From positions 298,610,694 to 298,674,693 of the forward strand of contig NC_058135.1 of the NCBI RefSeq assembly GCF_016433145.1: a stretch of 64,000 nt of DNA. The letters are read 5' to 3'. Position 1 is the stretch's first letter, and every line of letters starts with the position of its first letter. The stretch is from Gracilinanus agilis. Its lineage: Eukaryota. Below the pieces are notes generated by a model. The model saw only the letters and a program-made list of their open reading frames with translations, searched no databases and was not told the DNA's origin. Shown here in pieces: positions 35,777-64,000 of this stretch. Both the position numbers and the translations under genes were made by a program.

Positions 35777-36096
35777 ATGGCGGAGCACACGGTCATCACC
35801 ATGCACGGCGCCGGCCCCGAGAAGGGGCTGAGCCGGGACCCCCCGCGCGACTACCTGCTGCTGTCGCTCTTCAACATCCTGCTCCTGGGGAACCCCTGCT
35901 GCCTGAGCTTCGCGGCGCTCGTCTACTCCGTCAAGGTAGCCCCCTCCCCTCCCCCTCCCCGCAGGGCCGGCTGTGTGGCCCTCCCGGAGGCGCCCGGGGA
36001 AAGGCGGGCCATGGGGAGCCCCGGCGGGTCTTAGGCGGGGAGGACGGGGTGGGGCCCGGCGGGGGGAATCCAGGGCTCAGCCTCCAGGGAGGGAGC

Positions 36097-36130
<34 letters not shown>

Positions 36131-36435
36131 GAGGGCTGGCTGGGCCGTGGGCCGGCCCTGCCCCGCCCCCCCCCAAGGGCAGGTGCTTCTCCCCACACAG
36201 CTCGGGCCCCCCCGTGCCCATTGGAAAGGTGGGCAGAATGAGGCCTCTCCTCGTCTCTTAGTCCAGGGACCGGAAGCTGGTTGGGGACATGGACGGGGCC
36301 TTGACCTACGCCAAGACCTCCAAACAGATGAACGTCTGCGCCATCGTGCTCAACGTGCTGCTGCTCATCATCTTCCTCATCCTCTTCTTCCTCTACGTGA
36401 TCCCCGTCCTCAAGAACCTGTACCAGCCGCACTAG
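35777..36435 (+). CDS. IFITM family gene A (IFITM1-like, short N-terminus, CD225 domain), 110 aa
   Basis: Exons 35777-35935 and 36262-36435 with a phase-0 intron at the canonical K|S/A-RDRK site. Protein: MAEHTVITMHGAGPEKGLSRDPPRDYLLLSLFNILLLGNPCCLSFAALVYSVK/SRDRKLVGDMDGALTYAKTSKQMNVCAIVLNVLLLIIFLILFFLYVIPVLKNLYQPH. AATAAA at 36538. Confidence 0.92.
36097..36130 (+). repeat. (CCGGCT)n hexamer repeat in the IFITM-A intron
   Basis: About 5.7 perfect units. Confidence 0.85.
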
Positions 36436-42130: not shown

Positions 42131-45100
42131 GATGTGGGAGGCGGGAGCGTGGAGAGAAAAGAGCGCCCCGGGGAACCCCGCCCGCCCAGCCGGCAGACCC
42201 CCAGGCAAGGGGCGAATGAGACGTGAGAGGTGGGGGTGTGACTGCTGACTGCCCAGGAGGAAGGCGGAAAGGGACGAGGGAGAGCAGCCCAGAGAGGGAG
42301 GCGGCTGCCATCCTCCACCGCTCTGGGGACTGAGTGCGGATTTTCCCACCACTGTGCTCTAAGTCAAGTGGCAGCTGCGGCATTTCCCAGAAGCCCTGCC
42401 CTGCCTCGGCCGCCCGCATCCTCAATTCCCCACCGAGGTCCAGGCCAGGCGGCACCCGGCTGCCAAGAAAGCACACAGGATCTCGGGCTGCCTTGGGGGA
42501 GAAGCCTAGCCTCTGGGAGGGAGGCCCCGGCCCTGCTCAGCCTCAGTCCTGGGGGCTGCAGCTTGGGAAGGTCAGAGGTGAGCTGGAGAGCTTTCAGAGA
42601 AGCCCTGTGAGGCCCTCCTTGCATCCAAGTCATAGAAAGATCCATCCGAGGCTCAGGGGCCCCAGCAGCGCCTTGCTCCGCCCGGCTCCAGAGGACACTC
42701 GGCAGCAGGGAACAGAGCTCCGAAGAGGCTGCCCAAAAGGACCTTCCAGGGCACTGGTAGGGTTTGCGAAGTACCAAGCCAGGAGCTCCCATTGGAAAGG
42801 GAAGGTTTCAGCTGCAAGCCTGATGAGAAGGGCCCCTCCCCAAAGGAAGCAGACCTGCAGGCCTCCTGGAAGCCATTCCCACTGAGAGAAGGGCATCCGC
42901 AGCTGATGCGGAACCACCGTGTGGTGCTAAGGCCTGTGGCTGGAACTGTGACCCCCAGATGAACTTTGCGCCATCCGCGGCCCATCTTTTACCAGGGTCC
43001 CTCCCCATCCCCATCCCGGTCTTCATGCTGCTGGCAGCGGCCTCTCCTCTTTTCTCTTCTTTCAGCTTCTCTGCCCTCCTCACTGGAAACAATAGGCGCC
43101 CTCTCCATGGAGTCCCCACACCCTGAGCCTGCAGGCCCACAGGTTCCCTGAGGAAAGGCTGCTGTGGGCAGGCACAGCATCTCCCACATCCTGCTTCCCT
43201 CCAGTCTCCCAAATGGGACGTGGAGACCCCCAGTTCGAAGAGGAGCTCCGAGCCCCCTGCCTCCCGCCACACCTTTCCTTGGAGTGTAGAGGAGTGGCGC
43301 ACGGTGCGCAGTGACAGTGGGCAGTGATGACCATTCTTGAGCCTGGTCACACCCTTCCCAACCCTGTGACTGAACCCCTGCAGAGCATGCTGAAACCCTC
43401 CCCTCCCCCTCCCCCCCCCCAAGTTCCTCATTCTCATCCCCCTTAATCCTCCCTCTCCAGTTTCAGCCTAACTCCACCCAGCCCTTCTGCTGTGCCCTCT
43501 GGAATGCCTGGGCCAGAGGCAAGGAACCTCCCTCCATCTTAAGCCATCCCCCTTCTGCTCCTTCACTCCCTCTTCTTGGCTCCCTGGTCAAGGAGGGGGA
43601 ACTGGAAGGCTCCCATCTACCCACTGCCACTTCCAGGGCTCCCCCTTTCTCCATGACTCAGTAAGCTCAATGGGCCTCTTTCTTCCTGGCCTCCTGGCCT
43701 CCATCCAGGGGACCTCAGTGTCTGCAGAGACTCTCCCTCCCTGGAGCACCCTAACCACCCGGGTTCTAGGAGCTACTCCTCCCCCCACTCCACCTCACCT
43801 TTGATCTTGCGGCTCCCACCGACGTGCCCCAGCGAAATTCTGGGCTTCTCTCCCGCAGCCCCCCTCGGCTGGCCCTTCCCCTCTCCCCGGCCTCCTCTTC
43901 ACACTTCCCTGCTCTTCGCCCTCCCGTGGTTCTCTGGCCCTTTGATTCTCTCGCAGACCACCTGAGCGGCACTCTCTCCTCTTCTGCCCGCCCCGAGCCC
44001 TTGGAGAACCAGTTCCATTGGACTGGACACTGTCTTGCATTCCTCCCCCCTTTCCCACGTCACTTTATCACGTCACCCAGACGTCCAGCCTCCTGATATC
44101 AACTTCCTGCCCTCCCGCGTGCTACTGAAGGGAGGTGGAAAATCAGGCCCTCCTTCTGCCTGGGTCTACTGCAAGTGGACACACCTCGCCCCTCTCCGGC
44201 TCTGCATGGCTGCCCTTCCACACCTTCTCTTCCCTCCTCAGAATTCCCCTAGCTCCCCCTCCCCCTCCCCCCCAGCTGGTCCTTGCTTCACATTTTCCAG
44301 AAAAAAATTGTGGCTCAGATCGGGAAGCCCCGCCTCTCCCTCACTCGGGGCCTGCCGCCACCTGGTCCTCCCTCCTTTGTGCCTCCCTCCTGGCTCCGCC
44401 TGCTCACGGGATGCCGTTCCGGTGTCGCCTCCACACACATGCTCTCGTGCCCACCTCCCTGGGCTCTCCGCCGTGATCTCGGCTGCCCTCTGAGGCTAAG
44501 CCTCCTGCGGGCAGGCCTCTCTCTGCTCCGCCCTCGGGCCCGGCTCTCCTCCCCCTCCCCCTCCCCCTCCGGTGGGCCGGACCTCCCACTGGACATCTCA
44601 AGCTCCGCCCTCCGGCTCCAAAGCCTCTTCCTGGCCTTCGGAGCCCTCAGAGCCTCGCAGGCCCCGGCCTCCTCCCTGCCCTCCTCCAAGTCCTCTCTGC
44701 TGCGGGAAGCCTCCCAGCCCCTCTGGCGGGCCGGCCTCGCTCCTTCCTGGGGCCTCCCTTATCCGGGCCGGGCCTCGCCTCGCCTCGCCTGGCCCGGGGT
44801 GTCTGCCCGGAGGGTCATGTGACCCGCCTCTATAAAGGGCCGGAGGCTGAGCTGCAGGTTCCGGTCAGGCCCACGCCAGGCCTCCAGGGAGCTGCCCTTC
44901 CTGCCGGGCCACCTCTCCGGCCAGGGCCGGAGCTCCGGCTTCCAACCCTCTCCGAAGGGCCCGCGGCAAGCCGAGCCCCGAAAGGAGGCCTGCGGGTTCC
45001 GAGGGCAGCAGCCCGGGAGCCCGGGAGCCTGGGTCGGGATCCCCCCCATCCCTCTCCTGGCTTCCGGAGCAACTACCTGAGGGGAGGGGCCTGGGGAGCC

Positions 45101-45290
45101 CCGCCCCGCCCCGCCCCGCCCCGCCCTCGCCTCCCTTCCCGGGCCGGGGCGCAGGGACAGCGGGAGCAGGAAGAGGAGAAGCCTGGAAACAGGGTCCTTT
45201 ATTGCATTCAGCGGGGCGCCGCGGGGAGACGGGCCAGCGGAGGGGGCGCCGCTCCCAGCGCGAGGAGGGGGCGGGGCGGGGCGGGGCAAC

Positions 45291-46861
45291 TCAATTGCGG
45301 GGGAATAGCTGCTGCCTCTGGGCCAGGCCGATGAGTCCCAAGATCAAAACCGTGGCCAGCACTGCCAGCAGGAGGAGGGAGAAGATCAGGGCGAAGATGT
45401 TAAGGCACTTGGCGGTGGACCCGTAGCTCCGCGCTGAATCCAGGTCCCCCACCACCTTCCGGTCTCTGGCCTGGGCGGGGGGACGAGAGGCAGCCGGGGT
45501 TAGTGAGAGGCCGGGGGCCGATTTCCAGCTCAGCCGCTCGNNNNNNNNNNNNNNNNNNNNNNNNNNNNNNNNNNNNNNNNNNNNNNNNNNNNNNNNNNNN
45601 NNNNNNNNNNNNNNNNNNNNNNNNNNNNNNNNNNNNNNNNNNNNNNNNNNNNNNNNNNNNNNNNNNNNNNNNNNNNNNNNNNNNNNNNNNNNNNNNNNNN
45701 NNNNNNNNNNNNNNNNNNNNNNNNNCCCTCCCTCTGCCTCTGTCTCTCTCGGTCTCTCTCCGTCTCTGTCTCTGTCTCTGCCTGTCTCTCTGTCTCTCTC
45801 CGTCTCTGTCTGTCTCTCTCTGTCTCTGTCTCTGTCTGTGTCTCTCTCCCCTCTCCCTCCCGCCCTCCCTCTGCCTCTCGGTCTCTCNNNNNNNNNNNNN
45901 NNNNNNNNNNNNNNNNNNNNNNNNNNNNNNNNNNNNNNNNNNNNNNNNNNNNNNNNNNNNNNNNNNNNNNNNNNNNNNNNNNNNNNNNNNNNNNNNNNNN
46001 NNNNNNNNNNNNNNNNNNNNNNNNNNNNNNNNNNNNNNNNNNNNNNNNNNNNNNNNNNNNNNNNNNNNNNNNNNNNNNNNNNNNNNNNNNNNNNNNNNNN
46101 NNNNNNNNNNNNNNNNNNNNNNNNNNNNNNNNNNNNNNNNNNNNNNNNNNNNNNNNNNNNNNNNNNNNNNNNNNNNNNNNNNNNNNNNNNNNNNNNNNNN
46201 NNNNNNNNNNNNNNNNNNNNNNNNNNNNNNNNNNNNNNNNNNNNNNNNNNNNNNNNCTCCCTCCNNNNNNNNNNNNNNNNNNNNNNNNNNNNNNNNNNNN
46301 NNNNNNNNNNNNNNNNNNNNNNNNNNNNNNNNNNNNNNNNNNNNNNNNNNNNNNNNNNNNNNNNNNNNNNNNNNNNNNNNNNNNNNNNNNNNNNNNNNNN
46401 NNNNNNNNNNNNNNNNNNNNNNNNNNNNNNNCTCCCTCCCGCCCTCCCTCTGCCTCTGTCTCTGTCTGTGTCTCTCTCCGTCTCCGTCTCTGTCTCTCTC
46501 TGTCTCTGTCTGTGTCTGTATCTCTCTCTGTCTCTGTCTGTGTCTCTCTTCCCTCTCCCTCCCGCCCTCCCTCTGCCTCTCGGTCTCTCTCCGGCTCACG
46601 CGCCGGCACTGGCGCACGTGGCCCCCCCTCCCCCACCCCGCCGCCTACCTTCACGGAGAAGGCGAGCGCCGCGATGCCCAGGCAGCAGAAGTTCATGTAG
46701 AGGGCGTTGAACAAGGACCAGACAAAGAAGTCCTTCGGGGGCGGATCACAGGAGCGGATGTTGATGGTGGTGGAGGTCTCGGCCTCCTCGGAGAGCAGCT
46801 TAGAGCTGGGGGGGAAAGCGCCGTTGATGTGGCCAAGGGGGAGCGTCTGGGTGCTGGCCAT
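45291..46861 (-). CDS. IFITM family gene B (IFITM3-like, lacks the Y20 motif), 130 aa
   Basis: Exons 46861-46649 and 45470-45291. Protein: [136 protein letters not shown] at 45198-45203 (minus). Confidence 0.93.
45541..46575. repeat. (TC/TCTG)n-rich microsatellite with N gaps in the IFITM-B intron
   Basis: CT-rich low-complexity sequence interrupted by N runs of 185, 369 and 167 nt. Confidence 0.85.
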
Positions 46862-46960
46862 GGCGCGGGAGCCTCGGAAAGTGAGTGAGGAGCTGCCTGA
46901 GCGGCGGGCAGGCAGGCCAGGGGGAGGGGCCTCCTCGCACAGCCCACCTCCCCTCTGCCA

Positions 46961-46974
46961 ACTTTCGATTTCCC
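46961..46974 (-). promoter_or_regulatory. ISRE/IRF element upstream of IFITM-B
   Basis: GGGAAATCGAAAGT on the minus strand (GAAANNGAAA consensus), 100 nt upstream of the ATG. Confidence 0.75.
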
Positions 46975-47299
46975 CGAGCAGCCCAGCCTCTCCCAGAACA
47001 GAAACCGGTGAAGCGGGGCCTCCAGCTGGGTGCAGAGGGTTCCCCCCATCCCAGGCTGGGGAGGGCGCTGGGCCCCGGCTCCCGGCAGCCTCCCCTCACT
47101 GTGGGCCCCCTGAGCTTGCCCCAAAGCTGGCCCTAGGCCTGAGCTTGCTCCAGGGTCCCCTCCTAGTTCCGGAAGACCAGAATCCCCTCAGGCTGCTGTC
47201 CACCCGGCAGCCCTCGGGAGAAGTGCAGGCCTGGCCTTGTCTGGGTCGGCCCCGGGGCTGGTAGGCAGGAGCAGCTTCTCCTACTCAAACTCTGGGAGT

Positions 47300-48150
47300 T
47301 GTGAGTCTCACCTTGATTGACAGGTGAAGACAGTGGAATGTTCCCCGAGGCTGGAGGACAGGAGGAAAGGCGGTTGGCCAGAGGAGATAAATACCCTCCC
47401 TGACAGCCAGCTGACAAGGCCCTTGGCTTTGACCCTCGGCCTGGGACGTTGATCTGAGCTTGGAGCAGTGACCTGTGTGGGTCCTCTGGTTCTCATCTGA
47501 ACCATCACTAGACATTTAGGGAGCCGGGAAGAGGGAAGGAGAAGCAGCAGAGGGAGGTGAGGGAGGTGTTTCCTGAGGGCTGTAGCACTGACACAACAAC
47601 TGGCAGAAAGAAGCTGAGAGGGATCAGCGATATCCGAATCATCAGCCGAGCAGATTGCTTTCTCTGGTTTGGCCGAGGCCAAGCTGAGCCCGAGGAAGGG
47701 AAGGAGAGCTCCAGCATTACTGAAACAGCCTGCTGGCCTGAGGGATTAGTGATCCTAGCCACCAGTGACAGGGTCTCCTGTCCCCAATCCGTTCCTGATC
47801 ATCCCTTTCCCTTATAAAGTTGATTAAGTACCTTCCTGAGTGGTCATTACATCAGAGCCCTTGGGGAGGGAGCAACACAGTCAGATGAAAATGTGATCCA
47901 AGGCTAACAGGGCCCAATATTCACAATCAGTCCAACCCCAGGTGGGACCTGAAAGGGCTACCCATCCACTGACCTTTAGGGATCCTTCCTGGGTGCTGTT
48001 ATTGAGAAGGGCAGTTATTATACCATCCAGCTGAGTGACAGGACTCATGCGTCCCTGCACCAGCTATCAAGGGAGACCAAGGCACAGCTTCCCTGATCAA
48101 TATGCCCTATAATAACTAGAATAGTAGACAAAGATACCTTCTTTATAACA
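47300..48150 (+). mobile_element. Candidate solo LTR or LTR-like element (left boundary uncertain)
   Basis: More AT-rich than its flanks. It begins with TGTGAG, ends TATAACA exactly at the duplication breakpoint and contains a TATA-like gataaata near 47388. No target-site duplication was found, so the call is tentative. Confidence 0.35.
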
Positions 48151-49279
48151 TGTGCGAGCAGGGCCATAGGACGGGCAGGGAGAAGCTGCCCACAAGGGAT
48201 GCCGAGGAAGGCGAGGCAGCCTGGGCCCCAAGGCGGGGAGGAACTATGTGGGAATGGGGGGAAAGCTGGGGAGGTGATGCCCTCGCTCTGAGGTGGTCCA
48301 GGAAGGTCCTGAGAGGAGGGAAGCGGCTGCTGGGGGGCTGGCCTCGAGAGGGGGTGTTAGAAAGGCTGTGGGGACTAAGAACCTTAATCTCTGGGGTGGA
48401 AGGTGACTTGGCCAAGGTAACCCAGGGAGGGAAAGAAATGAGGTCCAGGCGGAGAGGAGGAGGACAGAAGCTCCTCGGGAAGGAGGCTGGAAAGGATGAT
48501 GTCTTAGCCCCCAGGAAAGGAGAGCCCAGCAAAAGGGCAGGCTGGAAGTGGGGGAAGCCAGCGGGGCACAGAGGGCCGGGAGCTTGGGCTCCAAGCGCGC
48601 CCTGGCGGCCGCTGCCGAGATTGCACGCTGAGCAGCCACACCTGGCTTCCCCCTGACCCCAAGAAGCTCTCTGGGGCAGCTCTGGGAATGCGGGTGGCTC
48701 CGAGAGGGCCAGCCTCCAGAGAAGGTTCCCGGAGGCTTTGGAGGCTTCCCTCCGCCGGTCAGCTACCCACCGGGCTTTCTTTGGGAGGGAGAGAGCGAGC
48801 CCCGAAGGAAAAGGAGTCTGGAAATCGGGGGACCCGGTCCAGAGCCCCTCAGCTCGACCAGGATGCCGCGTCTGCCCCAGGAAGGGCGGGCGGAGTCCCG
48901 CAGATCAAAGCCACCCTCAGGATGCCATACCCAACCCTCTGGGCTCTCCACCCTCGGCCGCAGGGACTCTCTTATTTTTAGCCCCTGCGGCGGCGGCGCC
49001 TTTCTCAGCTTCCCTTGGCTCTGGCAGGGCAGGAAAATGAAGAGGAAAAGAAAAAGCAGCCAATTAGAGGGCGGCTGGTGGGGCCGAAGTCTCTAGCCAG
49101 AAGGGACCTCCAGCGGGAGGCACATCAGATGGCACCAGCTTGGCCTTGATCTCCTGCTGGGCTTTGGGTGGTGTCAGCCTGGTGGCCCATGAAGACCTCT
49201 GAGGGGTGCCTCCCTCTAAGGAGAACTGGGGTGGGGGGAGGCACGCTGGGTGGCCCAGTGGATAGAGCCATGGCTTTCA

Positions 49280-49350
49280 GTCTGGCCTCAGAAATGCCTA
49301 GCTGTGTGACCCTGGGCAAGTCCTTTCAGCTTTGGACCCCCTGTTTAGCA
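49280..49350 (+). mobile_element. MIR/core-SINE fragment
   Basis: cagtctggcctcagaaatgcctagctgtgtgaccctgggcaagtcc. Confidence 0.7.
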
Positions 49351-49811
49351 GCCATTCTAAGGCAGAAGATAAGGGTTAAGGAAGCTAAACTGGGAGCCCC
49401 ATCCTGTCCCAGGGAGCAGCCACTTTCTGCTGCCCCCCTTGGGCTCGCTAGGGGGAGGGGGTCCAGGGGAGTGTGCTTCAGCGCCTGGGGGGGGATCTCA
49501 TTGGTCGGACTCCCAGAAGCCTCCCCTAAATGGCCGAGATCCCCAGGAGCCCCTGGGAAGGGGAGCAGATGGAGCTGAAGGAGGACGGGATCTCTTGGGG
49601 GTGGGGAAGAGTCCCCCTCCCTTCTGGGGGGGGAAAGCTAGAGAGAGGGAGGTAGGCCTTTGGGGGGGGTGTCCGAAGGGCCAGCTCCTATTGGTTCTTG
49701 GGGTGAGCAAGCCGCCAGGGGATACGGGCCGAGTTTCCTCCAGGGAAGTTTCTCCCCCTCCCCCACCCAAGAGATGTCTCGGGGAGAGGCAGAGAGGGAC
49801 GTGCTGGGTGA

Positions 49812-50914
<1,103 letters not shown>

Positions 50915-51760
50915 GCCTGCGCCGCCCCCCCCCCCAGCCGTCCAGTCCTCGCCCAGTTATCTCTCCAGAAAGACCCAATCCTCCCCCTTCCCCCCTCTGC
51001 AGGCCACTTCCGGTCAGGCCCCCATCTCGGGCGGGGCCCGGGGTGGAACGCGGGTCGGCACGAGGCTTTTCGTGGCAAATGCCCCGCCCCCACCCCCGCG
51101 CCCAAGGCTGACTCTTCAGAGAGCCCAGCCAGGGTCAGCGGGACCCCCGGCTCCCTCCCCCGGGGGTCCCCCCGCCCTGCGCCCTAGCCCAAACTTCCAG
51201 GCCCGCCGGCCTTCTCGTTGGCGAGCATCCTCCGGGCTCCCCGCCTCGCGCCCCCAGCCAGCGTCTGAGCTCCGGGTCCGAGGGTCTTTCGCGCAGGCCC
51301 GTGGCCGTGTGCCCCCGCCCAGGAGTGGGGGCGGCGATTGTTCGCTAGTGTAGAAGCCGGGGATGGGGGCCCTTGGAACCCGGGGGCTCCCCGCCCGGGT
51401 GGCCTCCGTGCCCCTGGCCGCTGGGAGAGGGGCCCACGGAGCGTCCCAGCCCGGGGTGTGGTGGGCCCGGCAGCCCCTAATTACAGGGTGGCGCCTCTCC
51501 TGTTCCCCTTCCCTCCCCCGAGTTCCTGCCGCGCCTCCCTCTCTGGCCGGAGCCCCCACCTCGGGCTCGGCGGCTCTTCTCCAGCCTGGCCGGTCGGGCT
51601 CCGCGCCCCCCCCCCCCCAATCCCGGCCTAGCCCGATCCACCCCTGGTCTGGGTGTGTCCCGGCCGGGCCGCCCTCCTCCTCACGCGGGGGTCCCGGTTT
51701 CTGGAAGGCCCGAATCGTGCACCTCTGGGCCGCCTGAGGCCCGGCACACAGTAGGTGCTC

Positions 51761-51766
51761 AATAAA
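51761..51766 (+). terminator. Probable IFITM5 polyadenylation signal inside a MIR-tail-like sequence
   Basis: The only AATAAA seen downstream of the IFITM5 stop before the PGGHG 3' end. Context: ggcccggcacacagtaggtgctcAATAAA. Confidence 0.55.
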
Positions 51767-51911
51767 GGACTGACCCCCCCAAGGGACTCGAGCCTGTTTC
51801 CAACAACTCCTGGGCCCAAGAGTGTCGGCGCCCGGCGGGGGGGGGGAGGGGGGAATACGGCGGCCTCAGAGGAGACCAAGGACCGGCTGGAGGGGGCAGA
51901 GGCCGCCGACA

Positions 51912-51917
51912 TTTATT
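51912..51917 (-). terminator. PGGHG polyadenylation signal AATAAA
   Basis: tttatt on the plus strand, about 245 nt past the PGGHG stop. Confidence 0.7.
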
Positions 51918-52161
51918 GAGTCCCTGCCGAGGGGAGGCCTGGGAAGCCGGGGAGAGAGGCTGGACGGGGCCTGGAGGTCCCGCCCTGGAGGGGTGGCAGT
52001 GCGGAAGCCGCGCGGGGAGACGAGAACGCTCCCGAGGCCGGAGAAGGGAAGGCAGGGAGGGGGGCTCGGCCTGCCCGAGGAAGATGCCCCAGGCGGTGGG
52101 GGCGAAGGAGGCCGCCAAGGGGCACTCGGGCCGGAGAGGCCCCCTCCCGGGTCTCCGCCGT

Positions 52162-55100
52162 CTACACGGGCGCCCTCTGGATCCTTCCGGCAGCGGCGGG
52201 GAAGGAGATCTCGCGTCCTGAGGGGGAGCCGCAGACTCAGCTGGGACGCCGTCGGGCCGAAGGCCCAGGGACCGCCCCCGCCCCGCCCCTCCCCTCGCCG
52301 GGGCGGGGCCTCACCCACGGGCAGGGGGAGGCGCTTCCCAGAAGGCCTCAGCTCCACCTCCAGGGGCGGGGCCCCCGGGACCCCCGCGGCCGTCACTTCG
52401 ATGGTCACCGCCTCCTCGGAGAAGTCCAGGCGGAGCTTGTGGCCCAGGTAGGAGACCCCGGGGAGCCGCACGGCCAGAACGGGGGCGGAGCACGCGGGGT
52501 CGAAGAGCAGGCCGGCCCCGGTGATCCTGTCGGGGGCGGCCCGAGTGAGAGCGGCCACGACTCCGGGAGCCCCGCGCCCCGCCCCCGCCCCCAGCCCTCC
52601 GCACCTGAGGCCCGTGAAGCCGAACAGCACCGCCTGCAGGAAGCCCCCCATCCCGGTCAGGAAGTTCACCGCGCCCGAGCCGTCCGCGTTCTCCGTCCAC
52701 ACCTACGAGGACGATCCAGGCGCTGCCTCCGGGCCCCCCGCCCCGTTCCCCCACCGGCCGGGAGGGCAGCGCCGAGCCTCACCTTGAAGGGCTCCGAGAT
52801 GTTGGAGAAGCACTTCCTGAGCTGTTCCAGGGCCTTCCGGGGCTCCTTCAGCTCCAGCCAGCCCACCGCAAACATGCTCTGGGGGAGAGGAGTGCGCGGC
52901 CTGCCCTCCCGCCCAGGAGCCCCGGGGCCCCCCTCTCCTCCCCATTCCGGTCCGGGGAGACTGAGGCCAGGCGGCGGCCCCCCCCCCCGCCCCCTTTACC
53001 CAGGACATTGCCGGGCCCTGGCGGGACGTCACAGCTTCGTAGGTCTCCAGATTGGTCCTGCGAACATCCGGGCTCAGGGCGTAGGGCACTGGGTAGCCCA
53101 GGAGGACCACGTCGGCCTGCTTGACCGTCTGTCCTGGGGGCAGAGTGCGGAGCACCCCGGGGTGCTCGGGATTAGCCGGCGGCGCGGGGCACCGAGGCCC
53201 CCTTCCCCCCCTCCACAGACCCCAAAGCCCTGGTCTGGAAGCGGGCGGGGCAAAGGCAGGATGGGGGCGGGGCGCGCTCACCCGGCTCGTAGCCGTCGAA
53301 CTCCGGGTGGTACTTCCTCTCCCTATCGAAGGGCACCTTCATCTTCTCGGCCACCGTCACCCAAAGGTCGGGGACTGGCCGGCCCAGGTCCCCGGCCAGA
53401 TCAGCGGCGAAGCGTAAGCTGCGGGGGGCGGGGCCGAGCTGAGGCGGGGCTGCGGGGCTCCGGGGCGGGGCCTCCCGCTTTACCTCCCCACCAGCCCACT
53501 CACCTGGTCTGAGCTATGACGTTGGTGTAGACAGAGTTGTTGACCCCGGAGTGGTACTCGTCTGGGGGCATCACCCCTGGGGGGGCGGGGGGGAGCTCTG
53601 AGCGCACCGGCCAGCGCTGGCCGCCCCCTCCGGGCCCTCCACCCGACCCTCACCTCGGAGCTGGTAGTTCTGCTCCTCCTCGCACCACGTGACCCGGCTA
53701 CACCAGAAGTCAGCCACGGCCCTGACCACGTCCCAGCCACCCGCCTCTTGAAAGAGCTGCACGTCCTGGGGCGAGGGGGGGCAGTGGGGAGAGGCCGTCC
53801 CCCCCTCCCTCCTCTCCCTCCCTCCCTCCAGTGCCTCCAGGGTACCTGGGTGGCCTGGTAATAGAGCTGGAAGGCCAGCAGCACCGCCCCGTTGACGTGG
53901 ATCTCCTGGGTCCCATAGATTTCCTCAGGACAGACCTCTCTGCCAGAGCTGGCACTTTCCCAGGCAAACTTGGCACCCTGAGGAGGGAGGGGGCCCGAAG
54001 GGGCCTTGAGGATGGAGCCAAGACCTTTTGGAAGTGGGTGGGATCAAGCCAAGGGCATCATGGCCACAGGCTTGAATTTCTCCTCTCCCTCCACTCCCTT
54101 GTGCCTTTGGGCCCAGCACTTGGTGCTCCTGGGCCTCAGTTTTCTCATCTGTAAAATGGGAGAGTTGGAGTCAGTGGTCCTCTCAAAGGAGCAGGCCAGA
54201 CCATGAAGGCAAAGCCCAAGCAGCCCCTGCCATCCATGGGCCCAGCTAAGTCATCGGGAGGAACTTGAGGCTGAGGACACTAACAGAAAGGGCAAACTTG
54301 GCTTCAAAGAGGCTGGTCTGAGGAGGGATCATATTCCAGGCATGAGGCACAGCCTAGTCAAAAGGGTGGAGGTGGGGGATATGACTCTGAGGTTTGGCCT
54401 TCAGGGGGTGGAAGATGGGAAACGGTAGGGAAAGGCAGGAAGCAGGCTGCCAAGGGGCCTTATTCCCTCCTTTTGCAGGTGAGGGAGCTGAGGCTGGGTC
54501 AGGTCATGCGGAGGAATCCACATGGAAAGCCGCCCACCTGAAATCCCAGCAGCTTGGCGTTGGCCAAGGCCCCGGCCAGGGTCCGGATTCGATACTCCAG
54601 GATGCTCCTGGCAGCGCTGGGCTCCAACAGGAGGATGCTGGGAAACATCCAGATGTCCTGCAGCAAAGATGCTGGCCTCAGGGGGGGAGGGGCGGGGCCC
54701 GAGGTGCGCAGGGGGCCGAGGGGCCCCGCGGCCGGCTGCCTCACCTGATCCCAGAAGACGTGGCCCCAGTAGCACTGGCCGCGGGCCCCATTGGAGAGGC
54801 CTCCAGGGCTGAGCCCGTGGAAGGGCTCGCGGCAGCCCGGGGGCGGCAGCGCGCTGAGCGTGTAGTAGAGGCACCCCCGCAGGGCCTGTCTCAGGGCGAG
54901 GGGCCCCTCCAGGTCCGCGGCCCAGGCCTCCCACAGCGCCGACCAGGCCGCGGTGTGGCGCGGGTACAGGCTGCCCGCCGCGCGCATGCCCAGGGCCTCC
55001 AGGAACTGGGCCTCGGCTTGCGCCCGGCTGCCCGCCACCAGCGTCAGGAAGTCCCACGTGCGCTCCTGCTCGTCCGCCGCCAGGCTCAGCGCGGGCGGCA

Positions 55101-55177
55101 CCGGCGTCCACAGCAGGTGCACCTCGGCCAGGGCGCCTCCTGGCTGCTCCGGGACCAGCGTGCGGCCGTGAAGGTAC
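52162..55177 (-). CDS. PGGHG: Protein-glucosylgalactosylhydroxylysine glucosidase (ATHL1, GH65), 3' part (11 exons)
   Basis: Minus-strand exons 55177-54745, 54657-54538, 53977-53846, 53765-53654, 53576-53504, 53418-53282, 53133-53000, 52878-52783, 52702-52605, 52526-52315, 52217-52162, all phase-consistent. Catalytic-region motifs [30 protein letters not shown] and [23 protein letters not shown]. Confidence 0.95.
54120..54170 (+). mobile_element. MIR core fragment in a PGGHG intron
   Basis: ctcctgggcctcagttttctcatctgtaaaatgggagagttgga. Confidence 0.7.
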
Positions 55178-55226
55178 CTGGCCGGGCAGAGGGGCGGCTA
55201 CTCCCGGGACCGCCCCCGCCCCGCCC

Positions 55227-55726
55227 NNNNNNNNNNNNNNNNNNNNNNNNNNNNNNNNNNNNNNNNNNNNNNNNNNNNNNNNNNNNNNNNNNNNNNNNNN
55301 NNNNNNNNNNNNNNNNNNNNNNNNNNNNNNNNNNNNNNNNNNNNNNNNNNNNNNNNNNNNNNNNNNNNNNNNNNNNNNNNNNNNNNNNNNNNNNNNNNNN
55401 NNNNNNNNNNNNNNNNNNNNNNNNNNNNNNNNNNNNNNNNNNNNNNNNNNNNNNNNNNNNNNNNNNNNNNNNNNNNNNNNNNNNNNNNNNNNNNNNNNNN
55501 NNNNNNNNNNNNNNNNNNNNNNNNNNNNNNNNNNNNNNNNNNNNNNNNNNNNNNNNNNNNNNNNNNNNNNNNNNNNNNNNNNNNNNNNNNNNNNNNNNNN
55601 NNNNNNNNNNNNNNNNNNNNNNNNNNNNNNNNNNNNNNNNNNNNNNNNNNNNNNNNNNNNNNNNNNNNNNNNNNNNNNNNNNNNNNNNNNNNNNNNNNNN
55701 NNNNNNNNNNNNNNNNNNNNNNNNNN
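55227..55726. other. 500-N scaffold join of unknown true size and orientation
   Basis: Exactly 500 N. The PGGHG 5' exons are not found on the far side. Confidence 0.9.
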
Positions 55727-56065
55727 GGGGGGGTGAGGGGGGGTCGTCTGTGCCCGAGCACTGATCCAGGATAAAACAAGTGCTCTCTTGTAAGGACTCA
55801 AAGCCATTCACGAGTTAGTGTTCCACTGGTAAGTTAATGAGTTTGTGTCCATCCCCCAGAAGAATGATCCATCCACACATTCTTCCACATGAAGGAAAGA
55901 GTCAGCCAGCTCTTGTGTAACTCACGTGCCCCTTATTCACTTGGGAACCCTGGCGAAGTAGCCACCTGTCTTTTGGGTTTCACTGCTCCCTCCTGGATTT
56001 TCTAGTAAATATGCACTCTCCCCTTCCTCTTCAGCTACCCAGCTCTGCTCCAAGCCCGCACTGGC

Positions 56066-56880
56066 TGAATGCTCCAAATCATTGTTGCCTGGAGAAATGC
56101 ACATTCAAACGCCTCTGAGGTACCACTTCACACCTATCAGACTGGCCCACATGACAGAAAAGGAGAGACTAAGGAAGGAAAATTGAACATCTCTGCTGTT
56201 GGGGTTCTAAATTGATCCAGCCAATTTGGAACTGTGCCCAAAGGGCCTTAACGGGCTGCCTGCCCTTTGATCCAGCCATAGCACTGCTAGGTCTGAACCC
56301 CAAAGAGATCATAAAAAATGTTTGTAAAAAAGTATTCATAGCCGCACTCTTTGTGGTGGCAAAAACCTCGATTGGGGAACGGCTGAACACATTGTGGTAT
56401 CTGTTGGTGATGGAATATTATTGTGCTCAAAGAAATAATGAACTGGAGGAATTCCATGTGAACTGGAAAGACCTCCAGAAACTGATGCAGAGCGAAAGGA
56501 GCAGAGCCAGAAGAACATTGTACACAGAGACTGATACATTGTAGCACAATCGAATGTAACTGACTTTGCTACTAGCGGCAATGCAATGACCCAGGACAAT
56601 CCAGAGGGACTTGGGAGAAAGATGCTCTCCACATCCAGAGAAAGAACTGTGGGAGCAGGAATGCAGAAGAAAAACATATGATTGATCACTTGTTTATATG
56701 GGTATAGGATGGAGGGGGTTGGTGACTATTATAAAAATTAATATGGAAACAGGTATCAAATGATACGACAAGTATAACCCAGTGGACCGGCTTCTCAGCT
56801 CTGGTAGGGGGGGAGGGAGGGGGAGAGGAAGTGAAGTGGGGCACTTTGTGCCACAAGGTCCAGACATCCAAAAGTTCAAA
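56066..56880 (+). mobile_element. LINE-1 3' end (ORF2 C-terminus and 3' UTR), marsupial/opossum type
   Basis: ggagaaatgcacattcaaacgcctctgaggtaccacttcacacctatcagactggc; tgaactggaggaattccatgtgaactggaaagacctccagaaactgatgcagagcgaaaggagcagagccagaagaacattgtacacagagactgatac; aaagaactgtgggagcagg. Confidence 0.88.
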
Positions 56881-59240
56881 TTAGTGGAAGCTTTATTACT
56901 GGCCAGGAGGTGCTCTCTAATAGAGTCGCCCCCAACAGAAGTGTCATGCAGCTTTTAGAGGAGTTTGGATAGGCAGGAAACAAGTGGACTCAAACATTTC
57001 CATACATACATGCTGGGGGGGTGGGGGCGGCTGGGAGCTCTTCCTTCTGGCTCCGCCCTGACTTGGGCGCCCACTTCTCAGGTCAAGCCTGGTCCTTGTG
57101 ATGACCCAGTGGCCTGCCGTCTTCTCTCTCCCCTTCTGTGTCTCCCTCTGTCCCTCCCCCACCTCTGTCTCTCTTCTCCCCTCTGCACTTGGCCGTCTCG
57201 GGTTCCTCCGTCTCTCCCCCTCCCCCCCCCCTTTCCGGGTCTCTCCCTCAGGCTGCCCCGCCGGTCTCTGGTGACGGAGGGTAGCCGCTACCTGCACTGG
57301 GCAGCCTTCTCAGACCGCCTGCTCTCCTCATCGCTGGCCTCGGGAGGGCTCTGCTGCCATGGCAACCCCTGCCCGCGTCCCCTGGGCCTGAGCCTCTGCC
57401 GACTCCTTTCCTCCCGGAGGCCCCACGGGGGTTAAAGCAGCCAGCCCAGCTTCCAAAATGCGCGTCCCGGGCTGTTGGGCTCTACAAGGTTCTGGAGCAG
57501 CGGAGGCTCACCGTGCCTTCAGGAGGCGAACTGCAGTGAGGAAGACCTCGGGTCTCCGCTTTCCCGGGAGTCCTCCCAGCGTTCCCCGGCCACCCAGCCC
57601 CATTCCTTCCCCCCACCCCCCACCCCGTGAAGGGGGCCACTTCACAGCCCGAGGCCAGACACCCAGAAAGTCAACAATTGGAGCCATTATTTATTGCCTA
57701 AAAAGAAAATTAAACGTCCCACGTGACAAGGCAGTCCAAGCAGGGTTACAGGCTCCGAGGCCAGCCCGGCTCTTATTTGTCACGAGGAGTGAGACGTGAC
57801 ACCCGCAGACCACAGCGGGGCTTTGCTTTTCCCACGTGCCCCATGATGCCCCCAGTCAGCTCACCTGCTCACCTGCACTCCAGCCCTCCCTGGCTGTCTG
57901 TGCCTGCCCTGCTGGCTGACCTCCTGGGCTTAGCCCAGGGCCTGGCACACTCAGGATGCCCAGAGGAGAAGGGAGGAGAGCGGCAGGTGCAAGGGGAAAG
58001 GCCAGCCTGGCCGTTGGGATTTCCAGGGGGCCTGAGGGCTCAGGGGTGTTATAAAGAAGGTATCTTTGTCTACTATTCTAGTTATTATAGGGCATATTGA
58101 TCAGGGAAGCTGTGCCTTGGTCTCCCTTGATAGCTGGTGCAGGGATGCCCGAGGCCTGTCACTCAGCTGGATGGTATAATAACTGCCCTTCTCAATAACA
58201 GCACCCAGGAAGGATCCCTAAAGGTCAGTGGATGGGTAGCCCTTTCAGGTCCCACCTGGGGTTGGACTGATTGTGAATATTGGGCCCTGTTAGCCTTGGA
58301 TCACATTTTCATCTGACTGTGTTGCTCCCTCCCCAAGGGCTCTGATGTAATGACCACTCAGGAAGGTACTTAATCAACTTTATAAGGGAAAGGGATGATC
58401 AGGAACGGATTGGGGACAGGAGACCCTGTCACTGGTGGCTAGGATCACTAATCCCTCAGGCCAGCAGGCTGTTTCAGTAATGCTGGAGCTCTCCTTCCCT
58501 TCCTCGGGCTCAGCTTGGCCTCGGCCAAACCAGAGAAAGCAATCTGCTCGGCTGATGATTCGGATATCGCTGATCCCTCTCAGCTTCTTTCTGCCAGTTG
58601 TTGTGTCAGTGCTACAGCCCTCAGGAAACACCTCCCTCACCTCCCTCTGCTGCTTCTCCTTCCCTCTTCCCGGCTCCCTAAATGTCTAGTGATGGTTCAG
58701 ATGAGAACCAGAGGACCCACACAGGTCACTGCTCCAAGCTCAGATCAACGTCCCAGGCCAAGGGTCAAAGCCAAGGGCCTTGTCAGCTGGCTGTCAGGGA
58801 GGGTATTTATCTCCTCTGGCCAACCGCCTTTCCTCCTGTCCTCCAGCCTCGGGGAACATTCCACTGTCTTCACCTGTCAATCAAGGTGAGACTCACAACT
58901 CCCAGAGTTTGAGTAGGAGAAGCTGCTCCTGCCTACCAGCCCCGGGGCCGACCCAGACAAGGCCAGGCCTGCACTTCTCCCGAGGGCTGCCGGGTGGACA
59001 GCAGCCTGAGGGGATTCTGGTCTTCCGGAACTAGGAGGGGACCCTGGAGCAAGCTCAGGCCTAGGGCCAGCTTTGGGGCAAGCTCAGGGGGCGCACAGTG
59101 AGGGGAGGCTGCTGGGAGCCAGGGCCCAGCGCCCTCCCCAGCCTGGGACGGGGGGGGGGGGAACCCTCTGCGCCCAGCTCGAGCCCATCCCGCAGGCCCC
59201 GCTTCACCGGTTTCTGTTCTGGGAGAGGCTGGGCGGGCTC

Positions 59241-59254
59241 GGGAAATCGAAAGT
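59241..59254 (+). promoter_or_regulatory. ISRE/IRF element upstream of IFITM-B'
   Basis: GGGAAATCGAAAGT, identical to the arm 1 core. Confidence 0.75.
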
Positions 59255-59357
59255 TGGCAGAGGGGAGGTGGGCTGTGCGAGGAGGCCCCTCCCCCTGGCC
59301 GGCCTGCCTGCCCGCCGCCCAGGCAGCTCCTCACTCACTTTCCGAGGCTCCCGCGCC

Positions 59358-60940
59358 ATGGCCAGCACCCAGAGGCTCCCCCTTGGCCACATCAACGGCG
59401 CTTTCCCCCCCAGCTATGAGCTGCTCTCCGAGGAGGCCGAGCCCGCGGGCGGCTGCCGGACCTCCACCACCATCAACATCCGCTCCTGTGATCCGCCCCC
59501 GAAGGACTTCTTTGTCTGGTCCTTGTTCAACGCCCTCTACATGAACTTCTGCTGCCTGGGCATCGCGGCGCTCGCCTTCTCCGTGAAGGTAGGCGGCGGG
59601 GTGGGGGAGGGGGGGCCACGTGCGCCAGTGCCGGCGCGTGAGCCGGAGAGAGACCGAGAGGCAGAGGGAGGGCGGGAGGGAGAGGGAAGAGAGACACAGA
59701 CAGAGAGAGATACAGACACAGACAGAGACAGAGAGAGACAGAGACGGAGACGGAGAGAGACACAGACAGAGACAGAGGCAGAGGGAGGGCGGGAGGGAGN
59801 NNNNNNNNNNNNNNNNNNNNNNNNNNNNNNNNNNNNNNNNNNNNNNNNNNNNNNNNNNNNNNNNNNNNNNNNNNNNNNNNNNNNNNNNNNNNNNNNNNNN
59901 NNNNNNNNNNNNNNNNNNNNNNNNNNNNNNNNNNNNNNNNNNNNNNNNNNNNNNNNNNNNNNNNNNGGAGGGAGNNNNNNNNNNNNNNNNNNNNNNNNNN
60001 NNNNNNNNNNNNNNNNNNNNNNNNNNNNNNNNNNNNNNNNNNNNNNNNNNNNNNNNNNNNNNNNNNNNNNNNNNNNNNNNNNNNNNNNNNNNNNNNNNNN
60101 NNNNNNNNNNNNNNNNNNNNNNNNNNNNNNNNNNNNNNNNNNNNNNNNNNNNNNNNNNNNNNNNNNNNNNNNNNNNNNNNNNNNNNNNNNNNNNNNNNNN
60201 NNNNNNNNNNNNNNNNNNNNNNNNNNNNNNNNNNNNNNNNNNNNNNNNNNNNNNNNNNNNNNNNNNNNNNNNNNNNNNNNNNNNNNNNNNNNNNNNNNNN
60301 NNNNNNNNNNNNNNNNNNNNNNNNNNNNNNNNNNNNNNNNNNNGAGAGACCGAGAGGCAGAGGGAGGGCGGGAGGGAGAGGGGAGAGAGACACAGACAGA
60401 GACAGAGACAGAGAGAGACAGACAGAGACGGAGAGAGACAGAGAGACAGGCAGAGACAGAGACAGAGACGGAGAGAGACCGAGAGAGACAGAGGCAGAGG
60501 GAGGGNNNNNNNNNNNNNNNNNNNNNNNNNNNNNNNNNNNNNNNNNNNNNNNNNNNNNNNNNNNNNNNNNNNNNNNNNNNNNNNNNNNNNNNNNNNNNNN
60601 NNNNNNNNNNNNNNNNNNNNNNNNNNNNNNNNNNNNNNNNNNNNNNNNNNNNNNNNNNNNNNNNNNNNNNNNNNNNNNNNNNNNNNNNNNCGAGCGGCTG
60701 AGCTGGAAATCGGCCCCCGGCCTCTCACTAACCCCGGCTGCCTCTCGTCCCCCCGCCCAGGCCAGAGACCGGAAGGTGGTGGGGGACCTGGATTCAGCGC
60801 GGAGCTACGGGTCCACCGCCAAGTGCCTTAACATCTTCGCCCTGATCTTCTCCCTCCTCATGCTCGCAGTGCTGGCCACGGTTTTGATCTTGGGACTCAT
60901 CGGCCTGGCCCAGAGGCAGCAGCTATTCCCCCGCAATTGA
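59358..60940 (+). CDS. IFITM family gene B' (IFITM3-like, intact PPxY/YxxL motif), 136 aa
   Basis: Exons 59358-59588 and 60761-60940. Protein: [142 protein letters not shown] at about 61028. Confidence 0.93.
59645..60690. repeat. (GA/CAGA)n-rich microsatellite with N gaps in the IFITM-B' intron
   Basis: Mirror of 45541-46575, with N runs of 167, 369 and 185 nt. Confidence 0.85.
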
Positions 60941-63900
60941 GTTGCCCCGCCCCGCCCCGCCCCCTCCTCGCGCTGGGAGCGGCGCCCCCTCCGCTGGCCC
61001 GTCTCCCCGCGGCGCCCCGCTGAATGCAATAAAGGACCCTGTTTCCAGGCTTCTCCTCTTCCTGCTCCCGCTGTCCCTGCGCCCCGGCCCGGGAAGGGAG
61101 GCGAGGGCGGGGCGGGGCGGGGCGGGGCGGGGCTCCCCAGGCCCCTCCCCTCAGGTAGTTGCTCCGGAAGCCAGGAGAGGGATGGGGGGGATCCCGACCC
61201 AGGCTCCCGGGCTCCCGGGCTGCTGCCCTCGGAACCCGCAGGCCTCCTTTCGGGGCTCGGCTTGCCGCGGGCCCTTCGGAGAGGGTTGGAAGCCGGAGCT
61301 CCGGCCCTGGCCGGAGAGGTGGCCCGGCAGGAAGGGCAGCTCCCTGGAGGCCTGGCGTGGGCCTGACCGGAACCTGCAGCTCAGCCTCCGGCCCTTTATA
61401 GAGGCGGGTCACATGACCCTCCGGGCAGACACCCCGGGCCAGGCGAGGCGAGGCCCGGCCCGGATAAGGGGGGCCCCAGGAAGGAGCGAGGCCGGCCCGC
61501 CAGAGGGGCTGGGAGGCTTCCCGCAGCAGAGAGGACTTGGAGGAGGGCAGGGAGGAGGCCGGGGCCTGCGAGGCTCTGAGGGCTCCGAAGGCCAGGAAGA
61601 GGCTTTGGAGCCGGAGGGCGGAGCTTGAGATGTCCAGTGGGAGGTCCGGCCCACCGGAGGGGGAGGGGGAGGGGGAGGAGAGCCGGGCCCGAGGGCGGAG
61701 CAGAGAGAGGCCTGCCCGCAGGAGGCTTAGCCTCAGAGGGCAGCCGAGATCACGGCGGAGAGCCCAGGGAGGTGGGCACGAGAGCATGTGTGTGGAGGCG
61801 ACACCGGAACGGCATCCCGTGAGCAGGCGGAGCCAGGAGGGAGGCACAAAGGAGGGAGGACCAGGTGGCGGCAGGCCCCGAGTGAGGGAGAGGCGGGGCT
61901 TCCCGATCTGAGCCACAATTTTTTTCTGGAAAATGTGAAGCAAGGACCAGCTGGGGGGGAGGGGGAGGGGGAGCTAGGGGAATTCTGAGGAGGGAAGAGA
62001 AGGTGTGGAAGGGCAGCCATGCAGAGCCGGAGAGGGGCGAGGTGTGTCCACTTGCAGTAGACCCAGGCAGAAGGAGGGCCTGATTTTCCACCTCCCTTCA
62101 GTAGCACGCGGGAGGGCAGGAAGTTGATATCAGGAGGCTGGACGTCTGGGTGACGTGATAAAGTGACGTGGGAAAGGGGGGAGGAATGCAAGACAGTGTC
62201 CAGTCCAATGGAACTGGTTCTCCAAGGGCTCGGGGCGGGCAGAAGAGGAGAGAGTGCCGCTCAGGTGGTCTGCGAGAGAATCAAAGGGCCAGAGAACCAC
62301 GGGAGGGCGAAGAGCAGGGAAGTGTGAAGAGGAGGCCGGGGAGAGGGGAAGGGCCAGCCGAGGGGGGCTGCGGGAGAGAAGCCCAGAATTTCGCTGGGGC
62401 ACGTCGGTGGGAGCCGCAAGATCAAAGGTGAGGTGGAGTGGGGGGAGGAGTAGCTCCTAGAACCCGGGTGGTTAGGGTGCTCCAGGGAGGGAGAGTCTCT
62501 GCAGACACTGAGGTCCCCTGGATGGAGGCCAGGAGGCCAGGAAGAAAGAGGCCCATTGAGCTTACTGAGTCATGGAGAAAGGGGGAGCCCTGGAAGTGGC
62601 AGTGGGTAGATGGGAGCCTTCCAGTTCCCCCTCCTTGACCAGGGAGCCAAGAAGAGGGAGTGAAGGAGCAGAAGGGGGATGGCTTAAGATGGAGGGAGGT
62701 TCCTTGCCTCTGGCCCAGGCATTCCAGAGGGCACAGCAGAAGGGCTGGGTGGAGTTAGGCTGAAACTGGAGAGGGAGGATTAAGGGGGATGAGAATGAGG
62801 AACTTGGGGGGGGGGAGGGGGAGGGGAGGGTTTCAGCATGCTCTGCAGGGGTTCAGTCACAGGGTTGGGAAGGGTGTGACCAGGCTCAAGAATGGTCATC
62901 ACTGCCCACTGTCACTGCGCACCGTGCGCCACTCCTCTACACTCCAAGGAAAGGTGTGGCGGGAGGCAGGGGGCTCGGAGCTCCTCTTCGAACTGGGGGT
63001 CTCCACGTCCCATTTGGGAGACTGGAGGGAAGCAGGATGTGGGAGATGCTGTGCCTGCCCACAGCAGCCTTTCCTCAGGGAACCTGTGGGCCTGCAGGCT
63101 CAGGGTGTGGGGACTCCATGGAGAGGGCGCCTATTGTTTCCAGTGAGGAGGGCAGAGAAGCTGAAAGAAGAGAAAAGAGGAGAGGCCGCTGCCAGCAGCA
63201 TGAAGACCGGGATGGGGATGGGGAGGGACCCTGGTAAAAGATGGGCCGCGGATGGCGCAAAGTTCATCTGGGGGTCACAGTTCCAGCCACAGGCCTTAGC
63301 ACCACACGGTGGTTCCGCATCAGCTGCGGATGCCCTTCTCTCAGTGGGAATGGCTTCCAGGAGGCCTGCAGGTCTGCTTCCTTTGGGGAGGGGCCCTTCT
63401 CATCAGGCTTGCAGCTGAAACCTTCCCTTTCCAATGGGAGCTCCTGGCTTGGTACTTCGCAAACCCTACCAGTGCCCTGGAAGGTCCTTTTGGGCAGCCT
63501 CTTCGGAGCTCTGTTCCCTGCTGCCGAGTGTCCTCTGGAGCCGGGCGGAGCAAGGCGCTGCTGGGGCCCCTGAGCCTCGGATGGATCTTTCTATGACTTG
63601 GATGCAAGGAGGGCCTCACAGGGCTTCTCTGAAAGCTCTCCAGCTCACCTCTGACCTTCCCAAGCTGCAGCCCCCAGGACTGAGGCTGAGCAGGGCCGGG
63701 GCCTCCCTCCCAGAGGCTAGGCTTCTCCCCCAAGGCAGCCCGAGATCCTGTGTGCTTTCTTGGCAGCCAGGTCTCGCAGCTGACTCCTTCCTCCAGGGCT
63801 TGACTCCCAACCCCTGCTCATTTTCAGGGGTGCTAATAGCCTTGGCCCAAACCCAGGTTCATGGATTGGGGACTCCCCAAAGACCATATGGATGTTGGAT

Positions 63901-64000
63901 CCTCAACAAGCAGGCATTGAGTCCCTCCATCTGCCCAGAGACTTTATCTGTGTAAAATTAAAATTAAATATCCAAATACTCCAAGTATTATTTTTATAAT

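Follow-up and report, generated by a model that had tools for sequence, protein, structure and literature searches.

A Candidate Pair of IFITM Genes With and Without the Tyr20 Sorting Module in the Marsupial Gracilinanus agilis

Two IFITM genes, here called B and B', lie in a 64,000-nucleotide stretch of the Gracilinanus agilis genome (assembly GCF_016433145.1, contig NC_058135.1, positions 298,610,694 to 298,674,693 of the forward strand; hereafter the window), and they differ at residue 20, the position of a tyrosine that serves as a sorting switch in human IFITM3. B' (136 amino acids, plus strand) has PPSYELL at residues 17-23, in which PPSY (residues 17-20) fits PPxY and YELL (residues 20-23) fits YxxPhi, while B (130 amino acids, minus strand) has PPSSKLL, with PPSS and SKLL in place of the two motifs. 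Human IFITM3 has Y20 at the center of its YxxPhi signal, which AP-2 recognizes, and PPxY serves as the docking site of NEDD4; when Y20 is mutated, the protein is retained at the plasma membrane, is less ubiquitinated, and has an altered antiviral specificity (PMC13194588). Judging from structure and sequence, B and B' may be marsupial IFITM genes of the immune type (IFITMA type) that sit on the two arms of a duplication, B being the derived, motif-less copy and B' the ancestral one, with a split in trafficking by analogy with human IFITM3. We put this reading forward tentatively, as one that is quite possible but somewhat short of probable.

Gene Structures and Coding Differences

Both genes consist of two exons (Table 1), and the split typical of the IFITM family, after ...SVK and before (A/S)RDRK, is found at the same place in each. 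A GT donor follows ...SVK, an AG acceptor precedes ARDRK, and the stop codon is intact in both copies. The predicted proteins are 100% identical to two separate NCBI entries of G. agilis, which are assigned to one chromosome, and both have a precomputed match to the CD225 domain (PF04505). In an alignment of 22 sequences the CD225 core is invariant, as are the columns of the palmitoylation cysteines C65, C66, and C99 of B', the counterparts of which in human IFITM3 are C71, C72, and C105 (numbering from PMC13194588).

The alignment of the two coding sequences (CDS) reproduced exactly the list of differences in an earlier note on this DNA, which had named R6T, Y20S, E21K, an 18-nt indel, a Met/Leu exchange, and one synonymous change. 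Codon 6 is ACG (Thr) in B and AGG (Arg) in B'; codon 20 is TCT and TAT, respectively; codon 21 is AAG (Lys) and GAG (Glu); the second membrane helix has CTG (L105) in B and ATG (M111) in B'; the only synonymous difference is CTG vs. CTC; and the in-frame segment encoding PAGGCR is present in B' only. The same alignment bore out two further statements of that note, namely that the tyrosine of B' stands at residue 20 inside the overlapping PPxY/YxxPhi module and that B is without both motifs.

As the note had also stated, a motif resembling the interferon-stimulated response element (ISRE) stands upstream of both copies. This ISRE-like motif, GGAAATCGAAAGT, has two matches in the 64-kb window, those upstream of B and B', against a chance expectation of 0.11, and each copy thus has, as a motif match, the ISRE near the start codon that is a mark of immune IFITM genes. 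The motif is close to that of tammar IFITMA (PMC3424830). By analogy, B and B' are probably interferon-induced.

Residue 89 of B' and its counterpart in B (residue 83), in exon 2, are Ser (VGDLDSAR), in a column at which most other marsupial copies have Gly and the dasyurid and bilby copies Ala. Human IFITM3 has at this position G95 of the GxxxG oligomerization motif.

Polarity and Recurrent Loss of the Tyrosine

Polarity was judged from an alignment of B and B' with 17 other marsupial relatives and from the tree of this comparison set. The protein collection used holds neither Monodelphis nor Didelphis, and the nearest relative in it is Dromiciops, at 65% identity. PPNYELLSEE is the usual form across the aligned relatives, and PPxY-E-x-L is kept in 14 of the 17. 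Three forms have lost PPxY and kept YxxPhi (Sarcophilus PRNYELL, Macrotis PHNYEGL, and Trichosurus TPKYEPL), and in tammar A1 both motifs are degenerate. In the tree all of the change falls on the branch of B (0.035 vs. 0 for B'). The alignment and the tree together identify PPNYELL as the ancestral marsupial state and B as the derived copy: judging from these sequences, S20, K21, and the six-residue deletion are derived in B. The outgroups are longer at the 18-nt segment, so that it is B which carries a deletion. M111 is, on the same evidence, probably derived in B', and the polarity of position 6 is ambiguous. In the tree, tammar IFITMA1/A2 cluster with B and B'. Of G. agilis itself, the collection contains just two proteins of this type, and a single IFITMA of the opossum Monodelphis has been reported, from a trace read only (Hickford, 2012; PMC3424830).

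The equivalent of Tyr20 was also lost independently in lineage-specific tandem paralogues of Antechinus (PPPCELL; P0014, L002 10001-10511) and Macrotis (PHNNEGL; P0019), and at the level of sequence such copies are recurrent. An ISRE-like motif likewise stands ~180 nt upstream of the Antechinus copy (L002 9809-9821). In these and the other species with arrays, the genes are arranged in tandem in the same orientation.

Duplication and Assembly

B and B' belong to the two arms of a 5.7-kb inverted duplication (BLAST E = 0; Table 1). The transitions between arm and flank are abrupt (42453/42454, 48150/48151, 58046/58047, and 63772/63773), and the flanks at all four arm ends have no match elsewhere in the window. 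An alternative-haplotype contig would remain homologous past the arm, and a two-copy structure is therefore more economical; a simple haplotig was rejected, the flanks 55727-58046 and 63773-64000 having no counterpart beside the other arm. A real duplication in two copies is in our view fairly probable, its order and orientation holding only as assembled.

A run of 500 N separates the piece with B from that with B'. Runs of this length we take to be marks of joins made by the scaffolder 3D-DNA, in which case B and B' lie on different scaffold pieces. The gap falls in the spacer, within a PGGHG-like gene and outside both IFITM coding sequences, so that the question of reading frame does not arise for the IFITM genes. 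A 686-residue PGGHG orthologue, found with the largest exon, aligns by its residues 148-685 with 55197-52168, a span that lies entirely left of the gap, whereas for residues 1-147 the whole window gave no match, even with highly permissive thresholds. Since these codons are missing at the join, the order, distance, and inverted orientation of the two copies hold only as assembled; on this sequence evidence, either sequence is missing there or the join is approximate. Continuity of the gene across the gap was considered and rejected: an NCBI model of PGGHG (564 amino acids) spans the gap, but the orthologue mapping stops left of it. This model extends to 57603, and its first exon is without similarity to PGGHG orthologues.

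The two introns are a second weak point, the exons of either gene being connected only across three runs of N. The runs measure 185, 369, and 167 nt in B and stand in mirrored order in B', with the same 8-nt and 162-nt islands of sequence between them. With introns mirrored in this way and codons 1-147 of PGGHG missing at the join, the copies were not found to be independently assembled across a verified join. Intron 1 (45541-46648 and 59589-60690) is filled by a ~1.2-kb GA-rich higher-order tandem repeat which broke the assembly; the whole span of the orthologous genes of Dromiciops, Antechinus, and Macrotis is only ~500 bp. The G. agilis assembly, based on linked short reads of 100 bp, was built by means of Supernova and GapCloser, was then scaffolded by Hi-C with 3D-DNA, and has a gap content of 8.25% (PMC8390783). 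Given this content and gap edges in poly-G and in the GA-rich repeat, the runs of N are more likely ordinary gaps than deliberate masks. Sequence resumes after such runs in poly-G tracts at 1414, 23958, and 55727, which fits a drop-out of sequencing at G-rich sites.

A Divergent Island at the 5' End

The differences between the arms are concentrated in an island of 326 bp in B, which covers the promoter, the 5' untranslated region (5'UTR), and codons 1-27, and of which ~245 bp are non-coding. It contains 10-15 substitutions, depending on gap placement, and 4-6 indels (3-5% divergence), vs. 9 differences in 4642 aligned bases (0.19%) in the arms outside it (Fisher p between 7e-8 and 1e-12). At an assumed rate of 2.5e-9 substitutions per site per year, the rough age would be ~6-10 million years for the island and ~0.4 million years for the remaining arms. 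The earlier note had called the pair very young, an age that the data do not establish: the N-terminal changes belong to an older or imported block, and the near-identity elsewhere may reflect conversion or collapse. Three histories would fit, namely an older duplication whose arms were homogenized by gene conversion, a young duplication with a patch from an unseen donor, and a collapse by the assembler that hides real differences outside the island. Within the window no donor was found; IFITM5 and a 110-residue IFITM match the CD225 core only. The island is >1 kb from the nearest unique flank; either of its versions may belong to either copy, and the two may be fixed or allelic.

The differences outside the island are themselves clustered, with four in 9 nt at 48043-48051 (partner 58146-58154) and two in 6 nt at 45366-45371 (partner 60860-60865), which suggests multi-nucleotide events, remnants of micro-conversion, or local assembly noise. 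In addition, the arms differ by a 6-bp indel in the part of the intron that precedes the first gap after exon 1.

Proposed Mechanism and Alternative Explanations

According to the reading that we favor, two IFITMA-type copies would each lie on one arm of a 5.7-kb duplication whose arms, as assembled, stand in inverted orientation on either side of IFITM5 and PGGHG; the near-identity of these arms may have been kept by arm-to-arm gene conversion, by assembler collapse, or by both, with the 326-bp island remaining diverged. B' would have kept the ancestral module in which PPxY and YxxPhi overlap at Tyr20, and B would have lost both motifs through Y20S, E21K, and the six-residue deletion. By analogy with human IFITM3, B is predicted to bind AP-2 and NEDD4 poorly, to remain longer at the cell surface, and to turn over more slowly, and B' to cycle into endosomes with a faster turnover. 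These effects on localization and stability are extrapolated from eutherian IFITM3, and the expression of both copies and any antiviral consequence are inferred as well. B has kept an intact reading frame and intact splice sites, together with the palmitoylation cysteines, the CD225 core, and the ISRE-like motif. It is doubtful whether one may go further and suppose that selection against conversion between the arms of a palindrome keeps the island distinct, giving one endosomal and one more stable surface IFITM, both interferon-induced, and that this split evolved separately in no fewer than three marsupial lineages (Gracilinanus, Antechinus, and Macrotis) as well as in primates.

Several observations weigh against the favored reading. 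The coding part of the island is 3.7% diverged and the non-coding part ~5% (p = 0.77). Because the two are equally diverged, the clustering of changes toward the N-terminus, which the earlier note had located correctly, is a property of a DNA block extending into the promoter and 5'UTR and gives no signal of selection on the protein. The pN/pS ratio (non-synonymous vs. synonymous differences per site) is 1.3, from four non-synonymous and one synonymous difference, and is not significant (Fisher p = 1; binomial p = 0.64). B and B' sit on separate scaffold pieces joined by Hi-C alone, the barcodes of linked reads would not separate copies ~10 kb apart on one long molecule, and, as the mirrored N-runs and identical islands in the introns indicate, the arms were probably not assembled independently. 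The literature yielded no paper on the sorting motifs or trafficking of marsupial IFITM proteins. For the claim of a paralogue pair, then, the unique flanks at all four ends speak in favor, while the unverified join, the different scaffold pieces, and the mirrored intron gaps speak against; we consider paralogy of B and B' probable.

If the copies are instead allelic or a product of assembly, the two versions of the island would be haplotypes of the sequenced animal, from one locus or from one of two otherwise identical copies, spread over two traversals of a collapsed repeat, and Tyr20/Ser20 would be a polymorphism. Such an origin would account for the mirrored N-runs with identical partial gap fills in both introns and for a divergence of only 0.19% outside the island, and it suits a gap-rich linked short-read assembly with an unverified 500-N join at which PGGHG exons are missing. 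However, the four arm ends run into different unique sequence, so that a single locus would need a transposed and inverted haplotype; an island of 3-5% with several indels is far above ordinary heterozygosity and implies an older paralogous or long-maintained source; and the 6-bp intron indel indicates that a single string cannot simply have been copied into both arms. We therefore regard this origin as somewhat unlikely.

It is also conceivable that B and B' are true paralogues and that relaxed constraint allowed B, as the redundant copy, to drift and to shed its sorting module with no new antiviral role, perhaps on its way to becoming a pseudogene. A pN/pS of about 1, protein change confined to one branch, equal coding and non-coding divergence in the island, several indels in the promoter of B, and the degenerate motifs scattered through other marsupial paralogues are all consistent with neutral decay. 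What makes it unlikely in our judgment is that the functional features listed above are all intact in B, that loss of human IFITM3 Y20 changes activity rather than abolishing it (PMC13194588), and that loss of the tyrosine recurs in three marsupial lineages and, as far as the abstract of Compton et al. (2016) goes, in primates (PMC5046194), which fits a repeatedly favored state. The sharp contrast between island and arm and the clusters of substitutions at 48043-48051 and 45366/45371 would likewise be expected if the duplication were very recent (0.19%) and a third, more distant IFITM outside the window had passed the island to one of the copies through ectopic gene conversion. We consider such a patch quite improbable, because the window holds no donor and the protein collection has only the two G. 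agilis proteins of this type.

Should the island indeed be held apart by selection, loss of the Tyr20 switch would be a predictable evolutionary route for IFITM duplicates. If the copies are real and their trafficking differs, marsupials and primates would have reached the same solution, an endosomal IFITM beside a surface one, by disabling one tyrosine-based switch, a convergence that would support this switch as the main evolutionary dial of the antiviral range of IFITM proteins, and B and B' would offer a natural S20/Y20 pair for experiments.

Neighboring Genes

The spacer between the arms contains an intact IFITM5 (133 amino acids; exons 50088-50276 and 50702-50914), which is head-to-head with copy B and 3.2 kb from its start codon, and the PGGHG-like gene described above. 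Outside the arms, an intact IFITM of 110 amino acids is encoded on the plus strand at 35777-36435 (exons 35777-35935 and 36262-36435). It has a short N-terminus with neither PPxY nor YxxPhi and resembles the IFITMB type of Hickford (2012), and no ISRE-like motif was found near it.

Table 1. Features of the IFITM region (positions counted from the first nucleotide of the window).
Feature	Position	Strand	Remarks
IFITM copy B, exon 1	46861-46649	-	Codons 1-71; PPSSKLL at residues 17-23; identical to NCBI protein P0002
IFITM copy B, exon 2 with stop codon	45470-45291	-	CDS alignment
IFITM copy B', exon 1	59358-59588	+	Codons 1-77; PPSYELL at residues 17-23; identical to NCBI protein P0001
IFITM copy B', exon 2 with stop codon	60761-60940	+	CDS alignment
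Codon 20 of B, TCT (Ser)	46804-46802	-	Derived; CDS alignment, marsupial alignment, and tree
Codon 20 of B', TAT (Tyr)	59415-59417	+	Ancestral; common to other marsupials and human IFITM3; alignments
18-nt in-frame segment (PAGGCR)	59441-59458	+	B' only; B carries a deletion; CDS alignment
Divergent island in B (promoter, 5'UTR, codons 1-27)	46779-47104	-	Partner in B' 59093-59458
ISRE-like motif GGAAATCGAAAGT, B	46961-46973	-	100-112 nt upstream of start codon
ISRE-like motif GGAAATCGAAAGT, B'	59242-59254	+	104-116 nt upstream of start codon
Duplication arm with B	42454-48150	-	Sharp ends in ordinary complex sequence; unique flanks; BLAST
Duplication arm with B'	58047-63772	+	Sharp ends; unique flanks (55727-58046, 63773-64000); BLAST
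B intron 1, GA-rich tandem repeat	45541-46431		N-runs 185, 369, 167
B' intron 1	59800-60690		N-runs 167, 369, 185; same 8-nt and 162-nt islands
500-N scaffold join between the B and B' pieces	55227-55726		Continuity not supported by gene structure
IFITM5	50088-50914	+	Intact; in spacer
PGGHG-like gene, codons 148-685 only	52168-55197	-	Mapping of the 686-residue orthologue

Comparison With Known Systems

The closest functional model is human IFITM3, in which 17-PPNY-20 and 20-YEML-23 overlap at the same position and by the same logic as PPSY and YELL of B'. The CD225 core, two palmitoylated cysteines in the first helix, and a third cysteine before the second helix are common to human IFITM3, B, and B' (PMC13194588). 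The marsupial sequences differ in having Ser in place of the ubiquitin acceptor K24 of the human protein, and a dependence of marsupial IFITM proteins on AP-2, Fyn, and NEDD4 is predicted from sequence.

With respect to genomic arrangement, B and B' agree with the marsupial IFITMA genes described by Hickford et al. (2012; PMC3424830) in having two exons and a similar ISRE-like motif near the start codon. In other marsupials the genes form tandem arrays of uniform orientation and their introns are short, whereas G. agilis has, as assembled, an inverted pair with a repeat-filled intron of 1.2 kb. The arms also resemble those of gene-converted palindromes with a diverged island, being alike overall (0.19%) save for one 326-bp block at 3-5%; unlike in homogenized palindromes, a collapse by the assembler could give the same picture here.

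Eutherian IFITM1 is likewise an immune IFITM without the Y20 module beside a paralogue that has it (PMC13194588; bioRxiv 10.64898/2026.06.11.731520). IFITM1, which has a short N-terminus and is enriched at the plasma membrane, is without the whole N-terminal extension, whereas B keeps the extension and lost the motif by point changes and a six-residue deletion. The abundance of macaque retrocopies was reported to be limited by PPxY (bioRxiv 10.64898/2026.06.11.731520). The phenomenon is already known in primates and, in this different form, in eutherian IFITM1; no paper describing it in marsupials was found, and the G. agilis pair is at present a sequence-level candidate from a gap-rich short-read assembly.

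The parallel with primate IFITM3 duplicates drawn in the earlier note holds as far as the abstract of Compton et al. (2016) describes them: N-terminal mutations in these duplicates alter localization and function (PMC5046194). B and B' are known from the sequence of one draft assembly and are near-identical save for an island that also covers the promoter. As in the primate "runaway" duplicates of that abstract, one lineage-specific copy would have lost the signal for endocytosis and ubiquitination while its partner keeps it (PMC5046194).

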